DNA from: Podarcis cretensis | Taxonomy: Eukaryota | Length of the DNA stretch: 64,000 bases | Assembly: GCA_951804945.1 (NCBI GenBank) | Contig: OX638151.1 | Span: 63,922,001-63,986,000, forward strand | Direction: 5' to 3' | Shown: one piece after another, positions 6,227-64,000 of the stretch | Numbering within the stretch: the first letter of the stretch is position 1 | How the letters are laid out: every line of letters begins with the position of its first letter | The notes under the pieces: generated by a model | Database searches by the model: none | Seen by the model: the letters and a program-made list of their open reading frames with translations, nothing else | Told to the model about the DNA's origin: nothing | Made by a program: the position numbers and the translations under genes

Positions 6227-46196
<39,970 letters not shown>

Positions 46197-50042: not shown

Positions 50043-50048
50043 TTTATT
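50043..50048 (-). terminator. Candidate polyadenylation signal of the Vac8-like gene
   Basis: TTTATT on + (AATAAA on -), about 670 nt downstream of the stop codon. Confidence 0.55.
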
Positions 50049-50717: not shown

Positions 50718-50839
50718 TCAGGTGTCCATATGTCTGACAGCAATACTGAGAAGCTCCTGTGTTTCTGCAGTTTGTTGACGGACTTGGTCAAGGTGCTTCT
50801 TCAGTTGGCTCTGGTTGAATGCTAATGAAAACTCTGCAT
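50718..50839 (-). CDS. Vac8-like exon 14: DAEFSLAFNQSQLKKHLDQVRQQTAETQELLSIAVRHMDT-stop
   Basis: ttttag acceptor, TGA at 50720-50718; ORF 50718..50918. Confidence 0.88.
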
Positions 50840-53800
50840 CTAAAAAATAGGGAAGCAACAACTCAACTTCTAGACCTGCACAACTCATCATATGTGTACA
50901 TCTTGCCCTGGTCCACAACTATACAAAACATTGGAGAGAGGTTTTGTTCTCCTGTCTTGCATTCAGCTTGGATCTACAAAAATCTGACATTCATATCAAA
51001 GCCAAATTGACCAACTTTGAGAACAGGAGACTCACACCTAATATATTCCTTGTTGTTTTAATACTTTCCAAGAGTAAGTTAGATACATCCTTTGATCATT
51101 TACTTGTTCAACAATGTCTCCTGAGAATCTTGCTTCCTGCTTTCTTTGCTAGGGGTATTTCCCCACTTTCAGACACAGAGTGTGATAATAATCTAAGCCA
51201 TTTATCAAACATTTATGCATGGAAGTTATTTTGCATTCCATGTTAACCAATACATTTTTTAAAAAAGTAAGTCAGGTTTGTTTGGTGCTGGAAGGTGCAT
51301 GCATAACTACTTTTCCACTGTGATTTTTTAAAACTGCCAAAAAAGAAGACTACTCCCCACTTTTTTATGAGAACCGTAAATAGCTGTTTCCAGGATTCAT
51401 ATATGCGATTATGAGAACAGATTCAGTTCCAGTAGGAAGCTTGTAATGAATACGGCAAATGAGCCTGTATAAAGTTCTGATTGCATTCTCAGTGAAATGA
51501 GAGTCAATTAACTTTCCACCAAACCTTTTTTAAAGGAGGACTTTGGTTTTCATTACCAGAAACAGGCAGGACTCAGCTGCGCATTATAGCTGCGGTGCTT
51601 CTGGTAAGTACTAATGAGCTTAGCTGTTATGCCATAGCATAGGAATCCCATGGGATGTTATGTGGCGAGTGATACAGCAGTCCATACCTTTCTGTAATAT
51701 GCAGAGAGTGGATATGCCCAGATGCTGAAAGCGATTCTCTTGATGAATAAGATACTTGATGAGGTATTGCTGTACCTTGCTCATATGAGATTTCAACAAA
51801 GACACCACCTCTTCTGTGCAATTAATTTGGAGACAGGAATAATTACAAAACTGAATGCACGAGGCAACATTTTACACACTTAACCTGGGAGTAAGTCACT
51901 GAACAAAGTGGGATTTCTTCTGAGTAAACATGCACTGTAAAATGTTGATACCCCATTACATTGCTGATGCACTACTTGGTTTTCTTGTTACTAAGTTGTT
52001 GGGTGAATGACAAATTATAAATTGGTATTCATAGTTTGGGAATGCTTATGATAATTTTATGGTGGGAAATGTATGCTTGGGCAGATGTTTAGTGCGATCA
52101 TTTTTATTGTGTTTTTTATATTTGTTTACTATGTGATTTGCCTTGAGACCTTAATAAATAAAGATTTTATAATGCTAATTAATAATATTCAGAATTCATA
52201 TATACCAATCATGAATGCCAGTATGGTATGGAGAATAGAGCCTTAAACTTCAGGTTTGGTTCATAAAGTTGAAGTTTGTAACTCAGAATAATAAGATTTC
52301 TTGCTGATTTTGGCCGCTATAATAATAATATACACTCACTGTGATTATTCTGACTCTAACACTTATAACATCTGTTATTTTTAAATGTTATATGGTGCAT
52401 TCAACAGAAACATTATGTTTATGTTATCATTGGTTATTCAAATTAAGCATCACTTCATATGGCACACAGTGATGTACAAATATTTTAGCGGCTTTGTGCA
52501 GTGTTGCTATCTTCAGTAGGGAAATGTAATACTGAGAAAAGGATTTACACAAGCAAGACAGAAGCTCCTGCCATGAACTCAACATGTATTCTTTACACCC
52601 AAAGGAGTCTGCTGGTGTGGGACAACTGGTAGATGCAGCTGCCACTTAGTCCAGAAAGAAAAAAAAATCTTAGGGAGTCCTATTGTAGCCCAGGGAACTC
52701 ACTGAAAACTATCCTAGAATTAGCAGGATTGGAAAATAAATAAAAGTTTTGTCAAAGCTGACTGGTACAGTGTTCTCCCCTGCTATTCAACCTGTTTGGG
52801 CCCATGGGACTTCTGTTGTTGTCACTTGAGTGATATCAGGCATGCTGGAAATGCAAACATCAGATCTTTTACATTGATACGTACTGTGCTGTAGGAGGTG
52901 TTTGATCACAAGGGCAGCGTGGAACGAAAGCTCTGCTTGTTCCACTTGGCCAGCCAGTGTTGCCAGACTGCATACCACTGAGTCATCCACCAATTCCAGC
53001 ATGCGCACTGTGGCTCCCTCTGGTGGTAGAAGAGCAGAGTAAAAGACTAAATCAGCAGAGTTGAAATAAAAGGAGACAAATGAACAGGCCTAGGGCCAAG
53101 GCTGAAAAGAGACTAGCAGAGCTTCAGAGGCCAGTAAAATGGATTTCAGAAGACTGAAATACATACATAGAAAGGGGGGTGTCAAAATGTTCAGAAGCAG
53201 ATATAAGCGGGAAGATTCCTTAGGGAGGGTTTCACCAATGGGAAATGTGATGCTCTGCTGCCCTGCTGCTCTGCTACCTCCCTTTCCATATATTCAGCTA
53301 GTAAACACCCAGAGGGTACCATGTTTGCCTCTGCTGGTCTAGAAGCACTAGAGAAATTACTAGCAATGTCAACACTGTTACCGATACAACACTTTGAGTT
53401 GGGATTAAAATCACTTGTCTGCTGTGTTTCACTCCTGTTAGCAGCTCTGTTAGCTATGCAGCCAGTGGGATAACGTAGAACTGTGGGAATCTGTTGATTT
53501 TACGACTGCCCTTTGGTTCCCTCTGTGCCCCAAAATTGTAAGGCTGCTGCAACCCTGTGCACACTGACTTTTGCATAGGTAAAGGCTACAGCACTACCTT
53601 CTGAGCAGACATGCATAACACTGTGCTGTAAAGTTGGCAGCAGCAACGGAAATCAATGAGTACAAAATGTGTGTGCTATCAGCCCATCCACTCAGCACTC
53701 TGGATGCCCCCTTACCATGTTTCATCAGGTCAACAAGAGAAGACATCACACAGTGAAGAGATTCCTCTTCTAGAAAGTCTACACTCTGGACAGCTTGAAA

Positions 53801-56800
53801 AAGTCCTTCAATGCATGGACTTTCTATGACTCTCTGCAAATAACAAAAATAGATGATGTTGTTACATTCATTCTGAAAATTGTGGTGTCCCCCCGCCACA
53901 ATTATAGATACCAAGCTCTTAGTTTGCCTTGGGCCTTCAGGGCTGTGCCTATTCAGCTGTTAAGCCCAGAAATGTGTGCAACAAAGGCATCTGTGGGGAT
54001 TTAATCTATGCAAATGCATGTTCTATTAAATGCCCTAGTTATGCATCATGACGCCCTGAGACTGTCCCACCAGGAGAGTTCAAATTACACAAATGTGCTT
54101 GAAATTAATGAATACAGAGTAAGTCTGCAATGATATGTGTTACAATAGCCTTCATTTCACAAGAAGCCATCAAGTGTGTGATAACAAGGCAATCTGGGAG
54201 ATGGTATGAGGAGCCAAGAATATATGGCATATTTCCTGCAAACATTTATCCATACACAGTGGGTTTCCACTTTCTTGAGCAATTATCATCTAAGGCCCTT
54301 CTTTGTGTGCCTCCTCCATGAGAGGTCTGGAGGATGGCAACATGAAAATGGGCCTTTTCTGCAGTTGCTCCCTGTTTGTGGAATGCTCCCACCAGGGAGG
54401 CTTTCCTGGTGCCTTCATTATATAGCCTTAGGTGCCAGGCAAAAATGTTTCTCTATAGCCAGGTCTTTGGTTGGTTGAGCATTCTATGGCCTTTTAAATG
54501 TGTTTGTGGGAAGGGGTGTTATTGGTTGGTTTTTGCTTTTGTTTTATTATGTATTTTGTGTTCTCATTTTGTATTTTTATGTTGTGAACTGCCCTATGGT
54601 CTTCAAATGGAGAACAGTATACAAATTTAATGAAGGAGAAGGAGGGGGGGGGAGGAACAGGAACAACCTAGTTGAAAAAGCATGTATACCAACAAAGCCA
54701 AATTTCCAAAAAGCCTACAGTGAAGGCGTAAAAGTCACAACTTGCTTTTTATTTGTTGGTAAGATTTTTCTTGTGTACTTTTTGAAACACGTGGTCATTT
54801 ACTCCCTTGAATGAAGCAAAGACGATGTTTCATTTTAATTATAAGGTTAGCAGATGTCCCTGTTTCCCGGGGACAGTCCCCAGATTTACAAATCAGTCCC
54901 CATACAAAATCCATTGAAGTTGAAAAGTGTCCCCAGATTCATTGAAAAAAATCTGGTAACCTTATTTTAATATCACTTAGTGAAGTGAAGCCTTCAGAAC
55001 AATGTGTAATCCTGAAAGGGAGACTTGGCACTCACCTGTATGCTTCTGGAAAGGCTGAGATTTTTAATAAAGCAGGCAGCGTGACCTACAATCACTGGGT
55101 CCATTTTCCAGGTGAGCAGCAGCTTCCCTACCGCCTGCAGCACTTCATCACACATCAGTGCATCCTGCAAAGGGAAAGGTAGCCAGTGAGTAGCTGAAAT
55201 GAAGGCAGCAGAAGAGACATGGTTCTACCATACCACTGTGAATGGGACTAGAGATGGGTGATTGAGATATATAGATATCTATATCACTTAATTGTTAATA
55301 AAATCTCAAAGCAGGTAAAAAAAGAATAAAAACAATAATCAGTAAAAAACATCCCCAATTAAAACAAGTATTTAAAACATTTTTTAAAAAATTAAAAATC
55401 AGCAATAAACTAAAACCAGAAAACACATGCCAATATTCTGCATGTCCAGACAAACCTTTTGAAACAAACATGCTTTTCTTTTTTAAGCAGGCACCAAAAA
55501 GAGTAGAGAGAATGAATTACTAAGGAATCAAAGAGATATGCTTTAAGTTTTTAAAACTCTTTACATTTAGGATGAACTGCAACAAGTGTATGGCAATTTG
55601 GGAGCTACAAAGCTGGGATGGAGAATTATGAAAAGCTCCACAAATTGTTGTCTCTTTGTGTTTCAGTCCCAACTCAGGGCAGCAATGCAGAGAAATCAAG
55701 CCTCCACTACCTCCAAACCACATCAGATGATCTTGAAATGTGTGTGTGCATCCAATGGTACATGCAGGATTTGACTTTCCTGTTCCACCACAAACCTCCC
55801 ATGTTACAACCTCCATTCATTTTATTGATGCCTTTGTCCCACCATATAGAGACTCATATATCAATCCCACATCCGAATGCAGATGGCAAGTTTATATTAC
55901 AAAGATGTGGGGCTTTTCTGTTTGTTAAGGAATGAAGGTGCTATGAAGTCAACCAAACCCAAAGTCACCAAAGAACAAATGATTTCTTCTTCCCTAGGAA
56001 CACAGTGTAGTGTTGGTAACCACTGAAACATTAGTTCATCTTGATTGGAAATGTTAGCTTTGTCCCACAGTTTGTTTTCCTGCTGGGGTTCCCATGGAGA
56101 GCTCCTTTTCTCCTTCACTTGGAATTCAGGTCAGAGCAGAATGGGAATCCTTGAAAAGGTCTTTAAAAAAACAACCCCAGTCTGGAGGGCATTGAAACCA
56201 GTACTCTGGGCAAACCAAGATGAAAAGCTGACCCAACAGAAGACAATATAAACATCTCTACTGAGGATTAATTGTTCAGGTTTCCTCTGTCACAGAACAT
56301 TTTCTCCAATGCCAAAGCAGCTATACCATCCATCACAACCACAAATGGATATTTGCTACACAGAATGTGAATCTCAAGAAGACAAATTAGAACCCAATAT
56401 GATTATAATCAGAATTTGTTCCCAGCGCTCCCTTTCCAACCTTATTTCTGGATATGCACATCATCCCACACTTTCAAATGCATGCTGAAGCCTTTTCAGA
56501 ATGAATTTTGAATTATTGTCTACTGATCACCTGGCCGCGTCAATCTGTCATTTTAAATGTGTTACCTTTGATGAAACTTTCGTCCACTGTCATCTTTCAA
56601 GGTTGAGCTGCCTCGGAGCATTACGGCCATGCACATTTGACTAAAGCTTACAAGGCAAAGGGTAATATAAAACAGAAATGTGTACCTGGTTGTCTGGGTG
56701 CTGGGATAAAATCCGGAGAAGAATGATGGAATTGTGCTGAGTGTCTTTCCTGTTAGATGCCAGGAGAGGGAGCAGGTGAGACGGGATCTCCAAAGCAACG

Positions 56801-57185
56801 ATGCTGGTCTGACCACTCTCTGTTTGGAAAATGAGAAGGTTGCTCAAGGTCATGTGTGTAGATCAATAGAAGCTGCTTTGGAGAAAAGGATTTGTGAGAG
56901 AAAGGGGCCTCCTCTAGACTGACTCAATCAAGTCAGCTGGACTTCACAGATCAGGCAATGTTATGTTATGACAGTATAGAAGTTAAACTTTAGGTTCTGA
57001 TTTTAATGAAAAGTCAAAAGAAGATGAAGACAAGAGGGTTGGACTGGTGTTTGTAGAAAGGCACTGCTGGAAAGAATTTTCTTCAGAATCAGGGGACTGA
57101 AATTGATAGAAAGGGTACAAAGAGTTGTGTTTCTGTAACTTTGGTTGGGATTGTGGTTGTGCAAAATCAGCTGCTAGGCGCAAGT

Positions 57186-57217
<32 letters not shown>

Positions 57218-57365
57218 CAGTGCTTTTTTCGGGGGGAATGTATAGGGGCACTCTCATTTTCCTATTCATAGGAATACTATTGAAATACTGCCCCTCAATG
57301 CGGCCAAACGTAGATTCACAAAATGTTTAGGAGTATGCATGCCCCTGCGGCACCCCAGAAAAAGC

Positions 57366-57396
<31 letters not shown>

Positions 57397-60300
57397 CCTT
57401 ATTCTTGTCTACTTTATCTTCACAGAATTGACAGTTTAAGAATGGTAAAAGGAAGTGTATGGATTTGTAGTTATAATCCATATTAATGATCTTGCTTGTC
57501 GATTTAAAACACAGAGAGACATCTTTCATTACAAGCACATGAGCAAAAATGTCAGTGGCCAGGGATATTTTTCACCAACTCCTTCTTCAGTCTCTTTTCT
57601 CCTTTTCTAGATGGTGTAAAACTGCCACATGATCTTTCTCCTGCCCCAAACATCTGTGGCAGAAATGTGCCTTGAGCATTGTAAGGTATTGGTCAATCAA
57701 GTTTTACTAATCTTTACATCAGTCTGAATGCTGGATTGGTTTGCAGTCACCTTCTCTAAAAAACTGAACCCGTGATTGTTGGTATACTTTAGAACAACAG
57801 TACTGTCACTCTCACAGCCTCTGGTAACTGAAGGGTTCATTAACTTTCAAAAAAAAAAAAGTCACACCATCCACGCGCCTGAAACCAAAACATGGTATTC
57901 ATCTTACTTAAAAGAACAAAGAGTGACTTGAGGACATTCCTTCCAGAGGCTAGACTGTACAAAACACAGGAAGGAGGGGGGTTCTATTTTTGTATGTTTT
58001 AAGTGACTGCAATTTTTCGTTTATTAGCATGCTAGGACTGTAGTACTTACCACTCGCGGCTAAATTCCTGAGACAGACACAAGCCTGGTTGGAAACCTAG
58101 TTGCAGAAAACAAAGAAATCAGAACCCAACAGAGAAAGAACTTTTGGCTGTGAAAAGGCCACAAAGCTGACTGGTCCACAATAGCTTTGTGCAATACTTG
58201 CTAAACCTCCAAAATGTTCTGACAGGATTATGGGTCAATGATGGGTAAAGTTAAAATGTAAGCATGTCCTCTGTGGCAACATGAGGCAAAACTAAGCCTT
58301 TAAAGCCAACTGTGAGAGTGCCCCATAGATATCTGAGAGATACTCAAAAAAGCGCCACTTATGGGTGCCTAAAAGTACAAGGATGTGTAGCCTTTCAGAA
58401 GAACAAATTGCTCTTGGTTTAAGGTGCATACACACCATATATTTAAAACATATTTAAAACACATGACAATCCCCCCCAAAAAGGAAAGAATAATGGAGCT
58501 GTAGTTTAACAGTGCTACAAATGGAAGCTCTGTGAGGGGTAAACTACAGTGCTCAGAATACTCTGAGGGAAGTCACGTGCTTTAAATGCATGGTGTGTAT
58601 GCAGCCTTAGTGAACAATCCAGTTAATTTTGCATTTGTTTGGGAAGATCTGTAATTGTGAAATTTTACTCTCCACACTACCTCACAATCTTCTCCAGGCA
58701 GAGATTAGGAAAAAGCCCATCCCTATATTCCCAGGCCATCACTGTGAGAATGAAAATATTGAACCAAGAGATCTCACCATTATTTAAACATGGAATCCCC
58801 TCTGACTGTAGGAGATTCTGAGTTTGATCTCTTAGAAATTCATGGAAGATGCCACATCTAGCTAACTCCAGCCTTTGTGTATTCTTGTGCCCCCATGCTG
58901 AAGAAAGCATCTTTTCAGTCATTTCCCTATACACAAGATATTTAGCCTGCAGTCCTAAGCATACCTTACTTGGAAATACACCCCACTGGTATCAAAATAA
59001 TATTTCTGAATAAACCAGGGGGGCTGTTAGTAAAACAAACCTGCATAATCCACAGCTTTACCTTGTCCACAGATGAAGACAGAAGGAAAAGGAGCATCCG
59101 CAGAAGAAACCTATCACAGGTTTGGAGCATGGCTTTATGGTGCTGCGAGTTTGTGGCCATGTTGCTCAGAGCTGCACAGCTATAATACTGTAAGAAAGAG
59201 AAGTGTTGTGATTTTGAGAAAGGAAAGCTTGTGGCCAAGGATTCTTAAACTGTGGTCAAGACCTCACAGCGAATGAAAGGGACCATGACTGATGATGGCG
59301 TTCCTAGGGTGATAAAATTGAGAGAGTATTTACATACAGCATCTCCCTGCATTTTCTGGATTGGCACTGTAGTACACCTCCAGGAGTTTTGGGAATGTCC
59401 CAGGAAAAAAGAATATTTGTCCAACGAGACACAACTGTGATTGCTACAGTCCACACTGTGTAGAGAGTCTGGATGTCTAAGAGTCAAAAAAGGGGGACAA
59501 TACTGCATCGGTGAGATGACCAGATCCCTTTTCTTAACAAATCACTCACACACTATTTTGTCCCCTTCTGCTAGGCATACTGCATAGATTCTGCTAGGCA
59601 AATGGCATTCCTTGCATTCATAAAATACTCATCATGAGGCTGTTTACAATTCTCAGGAGTCATAGTAAGAACAGAATAAAAGTCTACACTCCAGTCATGT
59701 ATTTTACATGTTTGCATTTCTCTTGCACTAGCCTGTTTGAAGATGAGAAAGAAGTATTTGTTCAGTTCTTGAATCTCAAACAGGTTAGTGCCTATTAATA
59801 GCTATTTCCAAACAAAAGTTGAGAACAGAACTGAGGAACTGGAATACCCCCTGGCTATTTTCTTTAACCCTACAACAAATCTGAACTATGAAATGAGCAC
59901 CTTTCTTCAAGCTGCAATGACCTGTTTTTTCATTTCACTAAAAAGCTTAGCAGTTCATTTCCAAGGTGCACAAACATATGTAGTACCCCCCTCCAAGCAA
60001 AAGTATGTGCAACACCATTGAATTACTAATTTCTGGAAGTTAAAATGTTAAAAGACTACTGTCTCGTCTATCTTTTCCTGCATCTGTAGGTTCAGTTGAG
60101 CAGCTGACTATTTCCACAGCTTTGAATGCTCAAAAACTTCTGTTTTAATGTCAAGTTTACCTGTACTTCTGAATCGGGAGACTGTAACAAAAGGGTGAGG
60201 ACTGGAAGAGCACCTTGTCGAAACAAAATTTGCTGAATCCGTTCTGCAAGGGAAGAGTGGTATTGCTAATGAGCTATTTTGACCAAATGAACATTCTCCT

Positions 60301-63300
60301 TATCATCACTGCATAGATAAGAGCTAAAAATAGCATTTTCTGGGAATAAGCCCAATTGGAATCAATTGGCTTTCCCGCTGAGTAGACATGATTTAGCATT
60401 GTACTTGAAGTAAAACATTTCATTTTAAAGAAAACAATAGCTTTGACGATAAGTTTCCCTTGCCACAAATTTCTGTTTCAATGCACTTGGTCCATTGAAA
60501 TAAATCTCCTGCAGCCTAATACCTGATTGTGTGAGGTTAAAAATTGCTCCAACTGCATTTTGTTGGACTCTTGGATCATAGGATTTAGAAAGGGCCAGTA
60601 AGGGTACCACTCCTCCTGCTGCTGCGATGGCTTCATGGCTGACATCTGGCAAAACAACAGGGCAAAATAGAAATCAATGAGGTTTCTTTGGAGGAAGAAG
60701 TATCCATGTTCCTCCAGGCACACTTTAAAGAACAGAGAGTGGACAGCACAAAACAGTTGCAGCATATGAGTTGGGGGTCCTGGGTGCCTAGTGGCAGAAT
60801 GAATAATGTTAAGAGTTTACCATCAGGTTTTTGTGAAGAAGCTTATTGCTATAGGTCACCTTGAAGCAAAACCTGACTTTAGAAAGTACACTTCATCATT
60901 TATTAATATCTGAACCCAGGACTCCAAGGCCAACTTTATATTTCTTGCACAGTATGGGGCCAGTGACTAGGCAGTTCTTAGGCAATCCTGGAGGACTGCA
61001 TTGGCTCCACTTGTGTGTCTGTGAAGCACCAAGCGTGTCACCACCCAGAGCCATCCAGGTAAGCTGCAGTCAAACTGGTGTCAGAAGTGTGCCTCCACAA
61101 GCTCTGCCCCACTACACTGACCACGTCTAGTTATAGCATACCAATGTGAATAATCCACTCTGCTCGCAGAATTCAGCTCTTCTTGATTCAGAATTTCTAT
61201 AACGATAAGGCACATCATTACCTCTCAATCACAAGGTGTGGATGTGACATTGTCCCTGGACCTGATTATTGCGCTATGCTTTGGACATGCTCCTCACCTG
61301 TGACAGCTAGTGTCATTATGCATGCACAGGAATTACACTGGACTGTGGCATCTTCAGACTCAAGCAGTTCCAGAATTGGCTCAATTAGATCCATTTGGAC
61401 GACATGATCCTTGGTTACTGTTTGTCAGTAAAAGCAGGAGTAAATGTTATGTTTACAGTGCCTTTAATTCAGCTATATACTGGAGAGAGAAAAGGATTGC
61501 CATCAGCGCACAATATCACTAGTGCATCTTACACCGGAATAAATGATTTCTCACCCCTTTGGTACGAGAAGTAAGCAAAACCCATCCTCTGAATGAATGC
61601 TCCCCCCCCCCCCAAAAAAAACCACATTTTATCAGGGCAAACATCCATCCTACTGATTATCACTTTTTAGTATAGGAATTTATATCCTGCCCTTCAAATA
61701 AAATACCAGGGCAACTGGACAGTGGTAGTTCCTAAGATCACAGCTGATGCTGATGGAGACTTCAGGATATGGTATCTTGGGCATTTACTCACCACTTCCT
61801 TCCAGTAAGAAATTCACAAGGGACGACGATGAAATCTGCTGAACCTCCAAGTCATTAGACTTCAACAAAGCATAGTATATTTCCAGATGCTCTCGAGGCA
61901 GCTGGATGTTCACTGCAAGAATGAGATGAAATGCTGATTGCAAAAAGCTCTTCTGGAACACTTGTCCCTTACATCTTCAAACACTTGATGCTTTTGGAGC
62001 AACACCTAGATGGCCTACTTTGCCTTTCAAAATACCTTATAGCCCTCCTTTCAGCTGTCTGTGCAAACTCACGTGAAAACTAAACCTGTATTACTTATTT
62101 TTACTAGCCCCTCTTCTGCCAACCTCTCATATGAGTAAAAAGCCAGCTAGCACTCGCCCACCTCTATAAAATAATAAAATGGGAGACTAGTAACTGCAAA
62201 AGTTGTGCCACATTATCTGGGCTCCAAGTAAATATCCACAGAACTTGCATTAGAAGGGGCTAGACCCAATTCACACATGCTAGGGAACCAGTAAGACTGC
62301 CTTGGGCACAACTCAGCTACGTTTGGGAGAAATTGTTTTGCTTCTCCAGGTTTCTACATTTTTTTAAAAAAGAGAGTATGGAATGGATCTTACAGTTTTG
62401 ATGATTTATGTTCAAGTAATAGAGAGCAGCAGACTTTTGCAAGCCGGGGTTCTCTGAAAACGCCAAGGTCCTCAGAGCCTCTAGGGAGACCTTGCCAAGT
62501 GGTGACATTTCAAAACCTTAAGAAAGATGTGATAATAACAGAGTCTGAATTGTGTCAGAAGAAGTTAAATACCTGAAGAGTCCAAATGCACAGAATTTAA
62601 AGCAACAGATAAAACACGACAGAGACAAACTTCCATGTAGAAATATTCTCTCCTTTAAAATTAGCATACTAGATAGAGCTGAATTTTTGCAGTCCAAACC
62701 TCATGTGAGAAAAAAGTTGTTATATATGCCAGTTTGTGAGAGTAGTTGGGACATTCCAAACTTGGATTTCTGTTACTGTATTTAGCAAACCAGCTTAGCC
62801 ATGCTATTTCCTTGATTATCAAGGATGAAAACAAAAGATGGGAGCACTTAAGAGTTGGAAGAAGTGGACAGCATTCCATTTGATGTCTTTCTGTTTTCAA
62901 ATAATAAATTCAACTCCAATCCTCTAATACCTAATAGGTTTTTACAGAGAGTATTTCAATGTTGGCTTAGGAAAGTGCTCGTGCTTGTAGCAAAAGTACG
63001 ATATGTGTTTGTTAGTCTTTTAAGATGCCACAATATTTCTTGTTGCTTTTATGCAAGAGGCTAACAGGTCTACCCCTTGCTATGATGCCTTTTGTAGAAC
63101 TGGGATTTCAAATGCTGAATGAGAGTAATTTAATCAATCGGCCTGGAACTGGGATCCACTGCTTTGTCTGAATATTTGGTGCTGGTGAAATACTGGTTCC
63201 CCCATTCTCCCTTCATTGCTTATAAGAGCAGAAGCATAAACAGCTCTGTGTCATTCACTTTATACGATCACTGAACTGCATGATCTTAAACAAAGCAACC

Positions 63301-63587
63301 GAGCTCAAGTAAACATCTCTCCAACTTTGGCTGCCCCACCTTCATAACAGAAACTTCTCACCTCTTTCAATGTGCTGCAGAAACTCCTGAGCAATCTCCT
63401 CTTCCTGGGTCCGAAGGGCAGGCTTGTATAGCTGCTTTGTTTTAAAGTTTTTCCGTTTCAGACAGGGGCACTCATGGATCTGACCCAAGCACTCCTGAAT
63501 ATCCTGCACCAGACCCGAAGACAGTGTTTTTACTGAGAGAGCCAAGTCACAAAGCAACTGGACACACTTTGTACACAGCTGACCCAT
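50718..63587 (-). CDS. Vac8-like armadillo-repeat protein, complete 14-exon CDS, 1731 nt / 576 aa
   Basis: 14 GT-AG exons join in phase with no stop or frameshift. ATG is in good Kozak context (atcATGG). Translation is colinear with recalled yeast Vac8 (e.g. KSYDPRVQQNAVGAIFNLTQS vs [36 protein letters not shown] vs [15 protein letters not shown]). Confidence 0.92.
51688..51813 (-). CDS. Vac8-like exon 13: KEVVSLLKSHMSKVQQYLIKYLIHQENRFQHLGISTLCILQK
   Basis: gcacag/gtatgg, 126 nt; ORF 51620..51808. Confidence 0.9.
52885..53019 (-). CDS. Vac8-like exon 12: EGATVRMLELVDDSVVCSLATLAGQVEQAELSFHAALVIKHLLQH
   Basis: caccag/gtacgt, 135 nt; ORF 52787..53008. Confidence 0.88.
53716..53833 (-). CDS. 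Vac8-like exon 11: RVIESPCIEGLFQAVQSVDFLEEESLHCVMSSLVDLMKH
   Basis: ttgcag/gtaagg, 118 nt; ORF 53594..53914. Confidence 0.88.
54290..54630 (+). mobile_element. L2-like LINE 3' remnant (similar remnants near 1000-1200, 4400-4830 and 11500-11650)
   Basis: gggccttttctgcagttgctccctgtttgtggaatgctccc...tgtgaactgccctatgg...tatacaaattta. Confidence 0.5.
54842..54964. mobile_element. Short hAT-like MITE
   Basis: TIR TAAGGTTAGCAGAT ... ATCTGGTAACCTTA, with imperfect AT-rich 8-bp flanks. Confidence 0.7.
55036..55164 (-). CDS. Vac8-like exon 10: DALMCDEVLQAVGKLLLTWKMDPVIVGHAACFIKNLSLSRSIQ
   Basis: ttgcag/gtgagt, 129 nt. Confidence 0.9.
56686..56819 (-). CDS. Vac8-like exon 9: ESGQTSIVALEIPSHLLPLLASNRKDTQHNSIILLRILSQHPDNQ
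   Basis: aaacag/gtacac, 134 nt; ORF 56641..56853. Confidence 0.9.
58051..58096 (-). CDS. Vac8-like exon 8: [15 protein letters not shown]
   Basis: aactag/gtaagt, 46 nt, phase 0-1. Confidence 0.92.
58420..58609. mobile_element. Palindromic MITE remnant
   Basis: aaggtgcatacacaccatatatttaaa ... tttaaatgcatggtgtgtatgcagcctt. Confidence 0.65.
59062..59187 (-). CDS. Vac8-like exon 7: [42 protein letters not shown]
   Basis: ttacag/gtaaag, 126 nt; ORF 58966..59238. Confidence 0.94.
60161..60243 (-). CDS. Vac8-like exon 6: [28 protein letters not shown]
   Basis: ttgcag/gtaaac, 83 nt, phase 1-0. Confidence 0.93.
60523..60645 (-). CDS. Vac8-like exon 5: DVSHEAIAAAGGVVPLLALSKSYDPRVQQNAVGAIFNLTQS
   Basis: tgccag/gtatta, 123 nt; canonical ARM repeat; ORF 60425..60652. 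Confidence 0.95.
61298..61417 (-). CDS. Vac8-like exon 4: [40 protein letters not shown]
   Basis: aaacag/gtgagg, 120 nt. Confidence 0.92.
61793..61912 (-). CDS. Vac8-like exon 3: LNIQLPREHLEIYYALLKSNDLEVQQISSSSLVNFLLEGS
   Basis: ttgcag/gtgagt, 120 nt. Confidence 0.92.
62394..62516 (-). CDS. Vac8-like exon 2: GFEMSPLGKVSLEALRTLAFSENPGLQKSAALYYLNINHQN
   Basis: cttaag/gtaaga, 123 nt, phase 1-1. Confidence 0.92.
63362..63587 (-). CDS. Vac8-like exon 1: MGQLCTKCVQLLCDLALSVKTLSSGLVQDIQECLGQIHECPCLKRKNFKTKQLYKPALRTQEEEIAQEFLQHIER
   Basis: ATG 63587, donor gtgaga, 226 nt; ORF 63342..63587. Confidence 0.88.
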
Positions 63588-64000
63588 GATTAACTTTCGG
63601 ATCCAACAGAAAATCAGAAATGCAGACTGAGAGTTTGTACTGCCACTGTTGCTTCTGTGTTCCCTTGTACTGGCAGATTGCGATCTAGATAACTCAAAAA
63701 ATAATTATCTAGACAAGTTGGAAGGGAAAGCTACTGCTGCTTTCTGTGTTCAAGCAGCATGGCTGAGCAAAATCTAACCACTGTTCTCTCTTGCGAAGCA
63801 TAAGAAATACTTTTAAAACTTTAGGCTGCAGCCAGTGGTGATCACCTTTCCTCTATCTTAGGAAGGAGAAAAATTAGGCGGTCAAACAAAAACAGTACAT
63901 TCAGAATCCACCTCTGTTCTGTAGCAGAGAAATCATGTTTTGTAAGCCAAGAATAAGGTCAACTGTTTTGGAAGGCTAGCAGCACCAGCCTCTGGGATAA

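Follow-up and report, generated by a model that had tools for sequence, protein, structure and literature searches.

The window analysed here comprises 64,000 nucleotides (nt) of Podarcis cretensis DNA (GenBank assembly GCA_951804945.1, contig OX638151.1, positions 63,922,001 to 63,986,000 of the forward strand), and its minus strand carries, from window position 63587 down to 50718, a gene of 14 coding exons for an armadillo (ARM)-repeat protein that resembles the fungal protein Vac8. Exons were delimited by three-frame reading combined with splice-site and phase bookkeeping, stop-free stretches with ARM-like content being found from 63587 to 50721 on the minus strand. All 13 introns are of the GT..AG type with pyrimidine-rich acceptors, and phases are continuous across the 14 exons. 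Joining the exons gave a coding sequence of 1728 nt, that is, 576 codons followed by a stop and with no internal stop, exactly the 14 in-phase exons and uninterrupted protein of 576 amino acids (aa) that had been described in the initial annotation. The start ATG (63585-63587, minus strand) is preceded by A at position -3 and followed by G at +4; going upstream in frame, a stop is reached after 40 codons without another ATG on the way. Coordinates of the exons and associated features are collected in Table 1.

The closest protein found was Podarcis muralis XP_028579352 (576 aa), which aligned by tblastn as 14 segments on the same 14 exons, ten of them at 93-100% identity and the other four (63-88%) extending into intron; identity within the exons is ~95%. 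The window's own protein was not among the named cluster members, and XP_028579352 (P0141) was used as its stand-in for whole-protein analyses, the exons of the window being searched singly. By tblastn, the 580-aa coelacanth protein matched 13 of the 14 exons in order. When the exon map was compared with the repeats of the predicted structure described below, about nine of the 13 introns fell within 4 residues of an ARM-repeat boundary, and nine of the 13 are in phase 1. Exons 4, 5 and 9-14 encode roughly one repeat each (~40-45 aa), and ARM5 and ARM6 are divided otherwise, over exons 6-8. A second gene copy in the window was considered and rejected, as gene-strand tblastn matches were confined to 50.7-63.6 kb, bar one weak internal-repeat match. 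RefSeq entries of lacertids (clusters of P0141 and P0148) include many isoforms (498-646 aa), which amounts to a prediction of alternative splicing or alternative first exons; the isoform examined here is the 576-aa form.

Table 1. Positions, in window coordinates, of the exons of the Vac8-like gene and of associated features (H1-H3, helices of an ARM repeat).
Feature	Position	Strand	Description
Exon 1	63362-63587	-	226 nt, aa 1-75 plus 1 base; vertebrate-specific N-terminal region; 97% identity to XP_028579352 residues 1-76
Exon 1 donor	63362	-	joined to exon 2 in contigs of runs X1, X6 and X7
Codons 1-8, MGQLCTKC	63564-63587	-	acylation-type motif
Codons 40-42, Cys-Pro-Cys	63462-63470	-	second invariant cysteine pair, within low-confidence linker
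Exon 2	62394-62516	-	123 nt; ARM1 region
Exon 3	61793-61912	-	120 nt; ARM2; flanking introns 2 and 3 skipped in spliced contigs
Exon 4	61298-61417	-	120 nt; ARM3; Pfam Arm, E 5e-6
Exon 5	60523-60645	-	123 nt; ARM4; carries the most conserved H3 helix; Pfam Arm, E 2e-7
Exon 6	60161-60243	-	83 nt; ARM5 helices 1-2; Pfam Arm
Exon 7	59062-59187	-	126 nt; ARM5 H3 and ARM6 H1 and H2
Exon 8	58051-58096	-	46 nt; ARM6 H3; 100% identity to XP_028579352 residues 308-322
Exon 9	56686-56819	-	134 nt; ARM7; 96% identity to XP_028579352 residues 322-367
Exon 10	55036-55164	-	129 nt; ARM8
Exon 11	53716-53833	-	118 nt; ARM9
Exon 12	52885-53019	-	135 nt; ARM10
Exon 13	51688-51813	-	126 nt; ARM11; aligned in the family profile to Vac8 residues ~456-485
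Exon 14, coding part	50718-50839	-	119 nt (50721-50839) plus TGA stop (50718-50720); last ARM and conserved C-terminal helix
AATAAA, candidate polyadenylation signal	50043-50048	-	pattern search; 669 nt past the stop

Transcription was assessed in sequencing runs X1-X18, which are tentatively taken to be RNA and come from related lizards, not from the window's own animal. These runs contain 5-15% of the words sampled from window positions 57600-63599, a stretch of which exons 1-8 make up 16%, as expected from spliced RNA. Contigs of runs X1, X6 and X7 (three studies and three organisms, 90-99% alike) omit exactly 845, 481, 375, 652, 279, 973 and 965 bases, corresponding to introns 1-7, and one X6 contig of 2876 nt reads through exons 1-7 consecutively, with ~590 nt beyond the coding part. 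At the joint of intron 3 (61418/61796) two extra letters are accounted for by a one-base species difference (Ser in the window, Asn in the relatives), and loose contig ends at 58051 continue without a gap into the start of exon 9, giving the junction of exons 8 and 9. These intron-less joints are good evidence of a spliced transcript. The absence of such transcripts had been named in the initial annotation as an outcome that would speak against it, and confirmation of the junctions by sequencing had been proposed; with introns 1-7 and the exon 8-9 joint reproduced in three runs of related lizards, the gene is confirmed as real, spliced and expressed in relatives. Separately, many unrelated contigs of all four runs start or stop loosely within intron 7 (~58528-58611) and intron 3 (61599-61640), where depth is very high (up to ~320 in X2) and the sequence resembles pieces of interspersed repeats.

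Orthologues were collected by protein searches. A search of 1.84 billion representative proteins with exon 1 (75 aa) gave 18 matches, including the 580-aa coelacanth and shark proteins and a cobra fragment, with the source names 'vacuolar protein 8-like', 'Vacuolar protein 8' and 'uncharacterized'. The coelacanth protein retrieved 270 clusters at E (expectation value) <= 1e-10, and the best 120 of these were from vertebrates only: chimaera, sharks, rays, sturgeon, caecilians, frogs (including Xenopus) and axolotl, together with turtles, crocodilians, tuatara and many species each of birds (chicken included) and squamates. Bowfin and tarpon (one early-branching teleost) were added by a short-query search. 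Mammals were absent from the best 120 of the 270 clusters, which is consistent with the literature and is no proof of absence. Non-vertebrates were likewise absent from those 120 and from the 17 matches, all vertebrate, of a query covering ARM1-5 (P0007), chosen so that a length filter would keep out full-length orthologues; lists of the best 120 matches could not reveal invertebrate members, so their absence there is no evidence. A metagenome scan with an alignment of 43 orthologues (A1) returned no fungal genes and two loci only. Both of these (L001:3001-3126 and L002:479-607, on contigs of 10.5 and 40 kb) hold an exon-10-like piece with 63-64% identity to the family and are presumably vertebrate host DNA in the samples.

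A tree of the 43 orthologues agreed with vertebrate phylogeny, a branch setting apart each of the cartilaginous fishes, the amphibians, the squamates, and the turtles plus archosaurs; this is one gene, passed down vertically from the jawed-vertebrate ancestor, and 77 columns of the alignment show no change between sharks and lizards. The locus is the lacertid version of this gene, which is single-copy in jawed vertebrates and the same one as P. muralis LOC114594173, chicken LOC421690, Xenopus 'vacuolar protein 8' and coelacanth LOC102356241. The initial annotation had the gene retained in reptiles, where it is indeed present; that scope was too narrow, since the gene was found across jawed vertebrates from sharks to birds. 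The pipeline label 'vacuolar protein 8-like', which had been anticipated, occurs in sharks, amphibians, reptiles and birds. The gene is thus already known and its sequence is no discovery: it is annotated in hundreds of genomes, in RefSeq and UniProt as 'vacuolar protein 8(-like)' or 'uncharacterized', and has carried the pipeline label for years.

Likeness to Vac8 was measured against sequences in the PDB. The coelacanth orthologue matched yeast Vac8 at E 1.4e-58 and 202 bits in one stretch (residues 59-530 against 13-481), as compared with E 7e-18 for beta-catenin and ~5e-16 for importin-alpha. The profile of the 43 orthologues (HMMER) gave yeast Vac8 281 bits and E 1.6e-82, again in one colinear stretch (59-534 against 13-485). 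With both the coelacanth query and the family profile, the natural rivals beta-catenin and importin-alpha reached ~68-80 bits, a forward best-match margin that applies among solved structures, with ARMC3, ARMC4 and ANKAR not among the matches listed. Searched alone, exon 2 (the atypical first repeat) matched only Vac8 chains (Vac8 residues 40-66, E 0.007), and exon 7 likewise only Vac8 (residues 217-253, E 0.01). For exon 5, Vac8 was the best natural match (colinear residues 153-188, E 3e-14), the next natural protein being at 0.07; exons 9 and 13, each alone, had no match in the PDB. When exons were scanned singly, Pfam recognised ARM in none but exons 4-6, and in the whole protein it found ARM/HEAT-type families only, up to the C-terminus. 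A block-by-block match beyond the generic ARM consensus had been claimed, and the scores (202-281 bits for Vac8 against ~70-80 for beta-catenin and importin-alpha, with exons 2 and 7 matching Vac8 only) bear this out; the yeast Vac8 peptides given in the initial annotation are all present in the Vac8 chains and align where claimed. As judged from these alignments, the likeness to Vac8 is specific, and Vac8 is by far the nearest solved relative.

An AlphaFold2 model of XP_028579352, built with alignment A1, had a predicted local distance difference test (pLDDT) score of 88 and a predicted template-modelling (pTM) score of 0.78. In the model, a helix (residues 6-38) and a disordered linker (39-58; pLDDT < 50 for residues 41-58) are followed by a second helix (59-76), ~12 ARM repeats (84-546) and a C-terminal helix (548-572), and the region of helix 59-76 aligns with the N-terminal helix region of Vac8. 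Foldseek placed Vac8 entries at ranks 1-5 (template-modelling (TM) score 0.77-0.82 by target, 29-30% identity), with beta-catenin at TM 0.55-0.63 and 18% identity. VIA-align gave Vac8 Z scores of 33-34.5 over 464-491 residues, and importin-alpha and beta-catenin Z scores of ~29 at 14-18% identity. Superposition on Vac8, which had been suggested as a check, thus brought the Vac8 crystal structures to the top in both programs. The predicted fold is that of an ARM superhelix whose ~12 repeats follow those of Vac8 in order throughout its length.

The N-terminus of the window protein, MGQLCTKC, offers Gly2, Thr6 and Lys7 as an N-myristoylation-type context and Cys5 and Cys8 as candidate palmitoylation sites. 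Gly2, Lys7 and the small residue at position 6 together agree with the N-myristoyltransferase consensus. All 43 orthologues have Cys5, Cys8, Cys40 and Cys42 without exception. Squamates, tuatara, crocodilians, birds, frogs, axolotl, coelacanth and sturgeon retain Gly2. Constant cysteines combined with a variable Gly2 point to palmitoylation as the common feature, with myristoylation added in many lineages, including that of the window. The motif suggests that the window protein is N-terminally lipidated, and the lipid anchor may differ between lineages.

Within vertebrates, conservation is highest on the H3 helices of ARM3-6 (0.84-0.96, against 0.71 overall), with 0.96 for that of ARM4, encoded by exon 5, and 0.57 for that of ARM7. 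In the family profile alignment, the H3 asparagine positions of ARM3-6 align with those of Vac8. Vac17, Nvj1 and Atg13 share contacts with repeats ARM4-7 of Vac8, where conserved side chains recognise the partner's main chain (PMC10161063).

Several known ARM proteins were compared with the window protein. Fungal Vac8 (Saccharomyces cerevisiae; PDB 5xjg, 6kbm, 6kbn and 7ycj) is alike in having ~12 ARM repeats and ~475 colinear residues at 29-33% identity, in its N-terminal Met-Gly followed by a cysteine cluster, and in the Asn-bearing H3 helices of its central repeats. Yeast Vac8 has 578 aa, the same size class as the 576 aa of the window protein. The window protein differs from Vac8 in helix 6-38 with the invariant Cys-x-Cys, in the C-terminal helix 548-572 and in its 13 introns. 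ARMC3 has ~870 aa, with an extra C-terminal domain that is not ARM. Like the window protein it is an ARM-repeat protein, and authors have tied it to Vac8 and to autophagy (ribophagy in spermatids); the window protein, with 576 aa and ARM/HEAT matches only, is set apart from it by the description of ARMC3, not by direct alignment. Importin-alpha and beta-catenin/plakoglobin share an ARM superhelix with a peptide-binding groove. Structural alignments gave importin-alpha 14-15% identity to the model, and a Pfam scan of the family protein found no IBB domain, importin-alpha being defined by IBB plus 10 ARM repeats. We know of no lipidation motif in the importin-alpha and beta-catenin/plakoglobin families. 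RAP1GDS1 (SmgGDS) is, like the window protein, a vertebrate all-ARM protein of ~600 aa, and it was absent among the Foldseek and VIA-align matches listed. To our knowledge it has no N-terminal Gly/Cys motif.

Among the vertebrate proteins for which evidence was found, the family of the window gene is the most Vac8-like. From this evidence, the gene probably belongs to the Vac8 family by descent, deriving from the same ancestral gene as fungal Vac8, and acts as a membrane-anchored adaptor. Several observations weigh against this reading. The designed consensus ARM protein 4rv1 scored 140-200 bits in several overlapping stretches and topped Vac8 on exon 5, so that part of the Vac8 score comes from near-consensus repeats. 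In language-model features (Atlas), RAP1GDS1 clusters scored 0.96, level with fungal Vac8 clusters (0.96), and ARMC3 scored 0.94. The comparison across ARM families was made by forward matches to solved structures, among which ARMC3, ARMC4 and ANKAR were not listed. The structural Z score gap between Vac8 and the other ARM proteins is only ~4-5 units (VIA-align). Alignment with Vac8 leaves ~45 N-terminal residues and the C-terminal helix unmatched. Turtles, a caecilian and all cartilaginous fishes have Ala, Ser, Asp or Glu in place of Gly2. Nvj1 and Vac17, the known partners of Vac8, are both fungal. Homologues of Nvj1 were not found outside Saccharomycetes (PMC6240307).

The alternative that survives best is a vertebrate ARM family that is not orthologous to Vac8, such as an old paralogue of ARMC3 or RAP1GDS1 with near-consensus repeats. 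The scores of designed consensus proteins and the Atlas values given above favour it, as do the lack of any non-vertebrate among the matches listed in the protein searches and the vertebrate-specific N-terminal 58 residues and C-terminal helix. It is nevertheless unlikely, because the Vac8 match is a single gap-poor colinear stretch of ~475 residues that includes the atypical first repeat and the last repeats, because the non-consensus exons 2 and 7 match only Vac8 in the PDB, and because the scores of natural ARM families in the PDB are lower by a factor of three to four. The length class and the type of acylation motif are also those of Vac8, and RAP1GDS1 was absent from the 60 best PDB sequence matches listed, the presence of a RAP1GDS1 chain in that copy of the PDB being unchecked.

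Horizontal transfer of a fungal or protist Vac8 gene into the jawed-vertebrate ancestor, with introns gained later, would fit the observation that the nearest non-vertebrate relatives among the matches listed are fungal Vac8 proteins, with no invertebrate member listed. That absence carries no weight, the best-120 lists being unable to display invertebrate members, and the 13 spliceosomal introns, about nine of them at repeat boundaries, the identity to Vac8 of merely 29-33% and the vertical inheritance since the gnathostome ancestor make transfer very improbable. The idea that the gene is decaying or not expressed, or that its model arose from wrongly joined open stretches, was rejected: very low expression of the chicken gene (0.56-0.82 in pituitary; PMC5148799) speaks for it, and against it stand the open frame of 576 codons with canonical splice sites throughout, spliced contigs from three studies, the close agreement with P. 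muralis and the columns held invariant from sharks to lizards.

The gene product can be described as a four-part protein, with an acylation-type N-terminus joined to a vertebrate-specific helix and Cys-x-Cys, a short helix alignable with Vac8, ~12 ARM repeats, and a C-terminal helix. In outline as in Vac8, N-terminal lipids would anchor the protein to the cytosolic side of a membrane; extended peptide segments of partner proteins would bind in the concave groove that the H3 helices of the central repeats line. The net role would most likely be that of a membrane-anchored adaptor, a lipid-anchored ARM platform. A role at the lysosome, at contact sites or in autophagy is speculative. In its strongest form, the reading holds that a true Vac8 persists in jawed vertebrates other than mammals, as a lipid-anchored ARM hub on lysosomes or organelles akin to them that serves contact sites, organelle transport or the initiation of autophagy, and that it was lost in mammals and most teleosts, ARMC3 being a more distant paralogue; this is conceivable, if rather doubtful.

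Vac8 has been described as having 'no obvious mammalian orthologs' (PMC4951168), and Hollenstein et al. raised the question of whether animals have a Vac8-like coordinator of autophagosome formation. ARMC3 has been named a potential Vac8 homologue (PMC8664900), 'the mammalian homolog' of Vac8 (PMC13423387) and, in a 2026 preprint, its 'ortholog' (bioRxiv 10.64898/2026.10.05.756849); in an older phylogeny, armc3 and vac8p formed separate monophyletic clades (PMC3141441). The only paper found to name the gene studied here is the one reporting the pituitary values cited above, in which chicken LOC421690 is a table row. The searchable literature yielded no functional study or discussion of this vertebrate gene, in agreement with what the initial annotation had supposed. 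The point of interest is the gap between a database label, 'vacuolar protein 8-like', and publications in which ARMC3 is the animal counterpart, given a gene that looks far closer to Vac8 in length, repeat order and N-terminal motif and that is present in the tractable Xenopus and chicken. Should a tree confirm it as a Vac8 orthologue, the account of Vac8 as fungal-specific, or of ARMC3 as its orthologue, would need correcting, and a Vac8-type membrane adaptor would become directly testable in a vertebrate.

Elsewhere in the window, an open stretch on the plus strand (36696-37112) encodes a Glu/Lys/Arg-rich coiled-coil with a marginal Pfam match to MAP7 (29.0 bits against a cut-off of 28.5), and lies in a GC-richer part of the window (36-40 kb; guanine-plus-cytosine fraction 0.45-0.48). 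One possibility is a MAP7-family exon, from a gene arranged tail-to-tail with the Vac8-like gene; the other is mere low-complexity sequence. A run of 143 N (35625-35767) marks an assembly gap or masked stretch. Within intron 8 of the Vac8-like gene (~57170-57420) are two (CA/TG)n microsatellite tracts, which appear as Cys-Val or Thr-His runs in frame translations.

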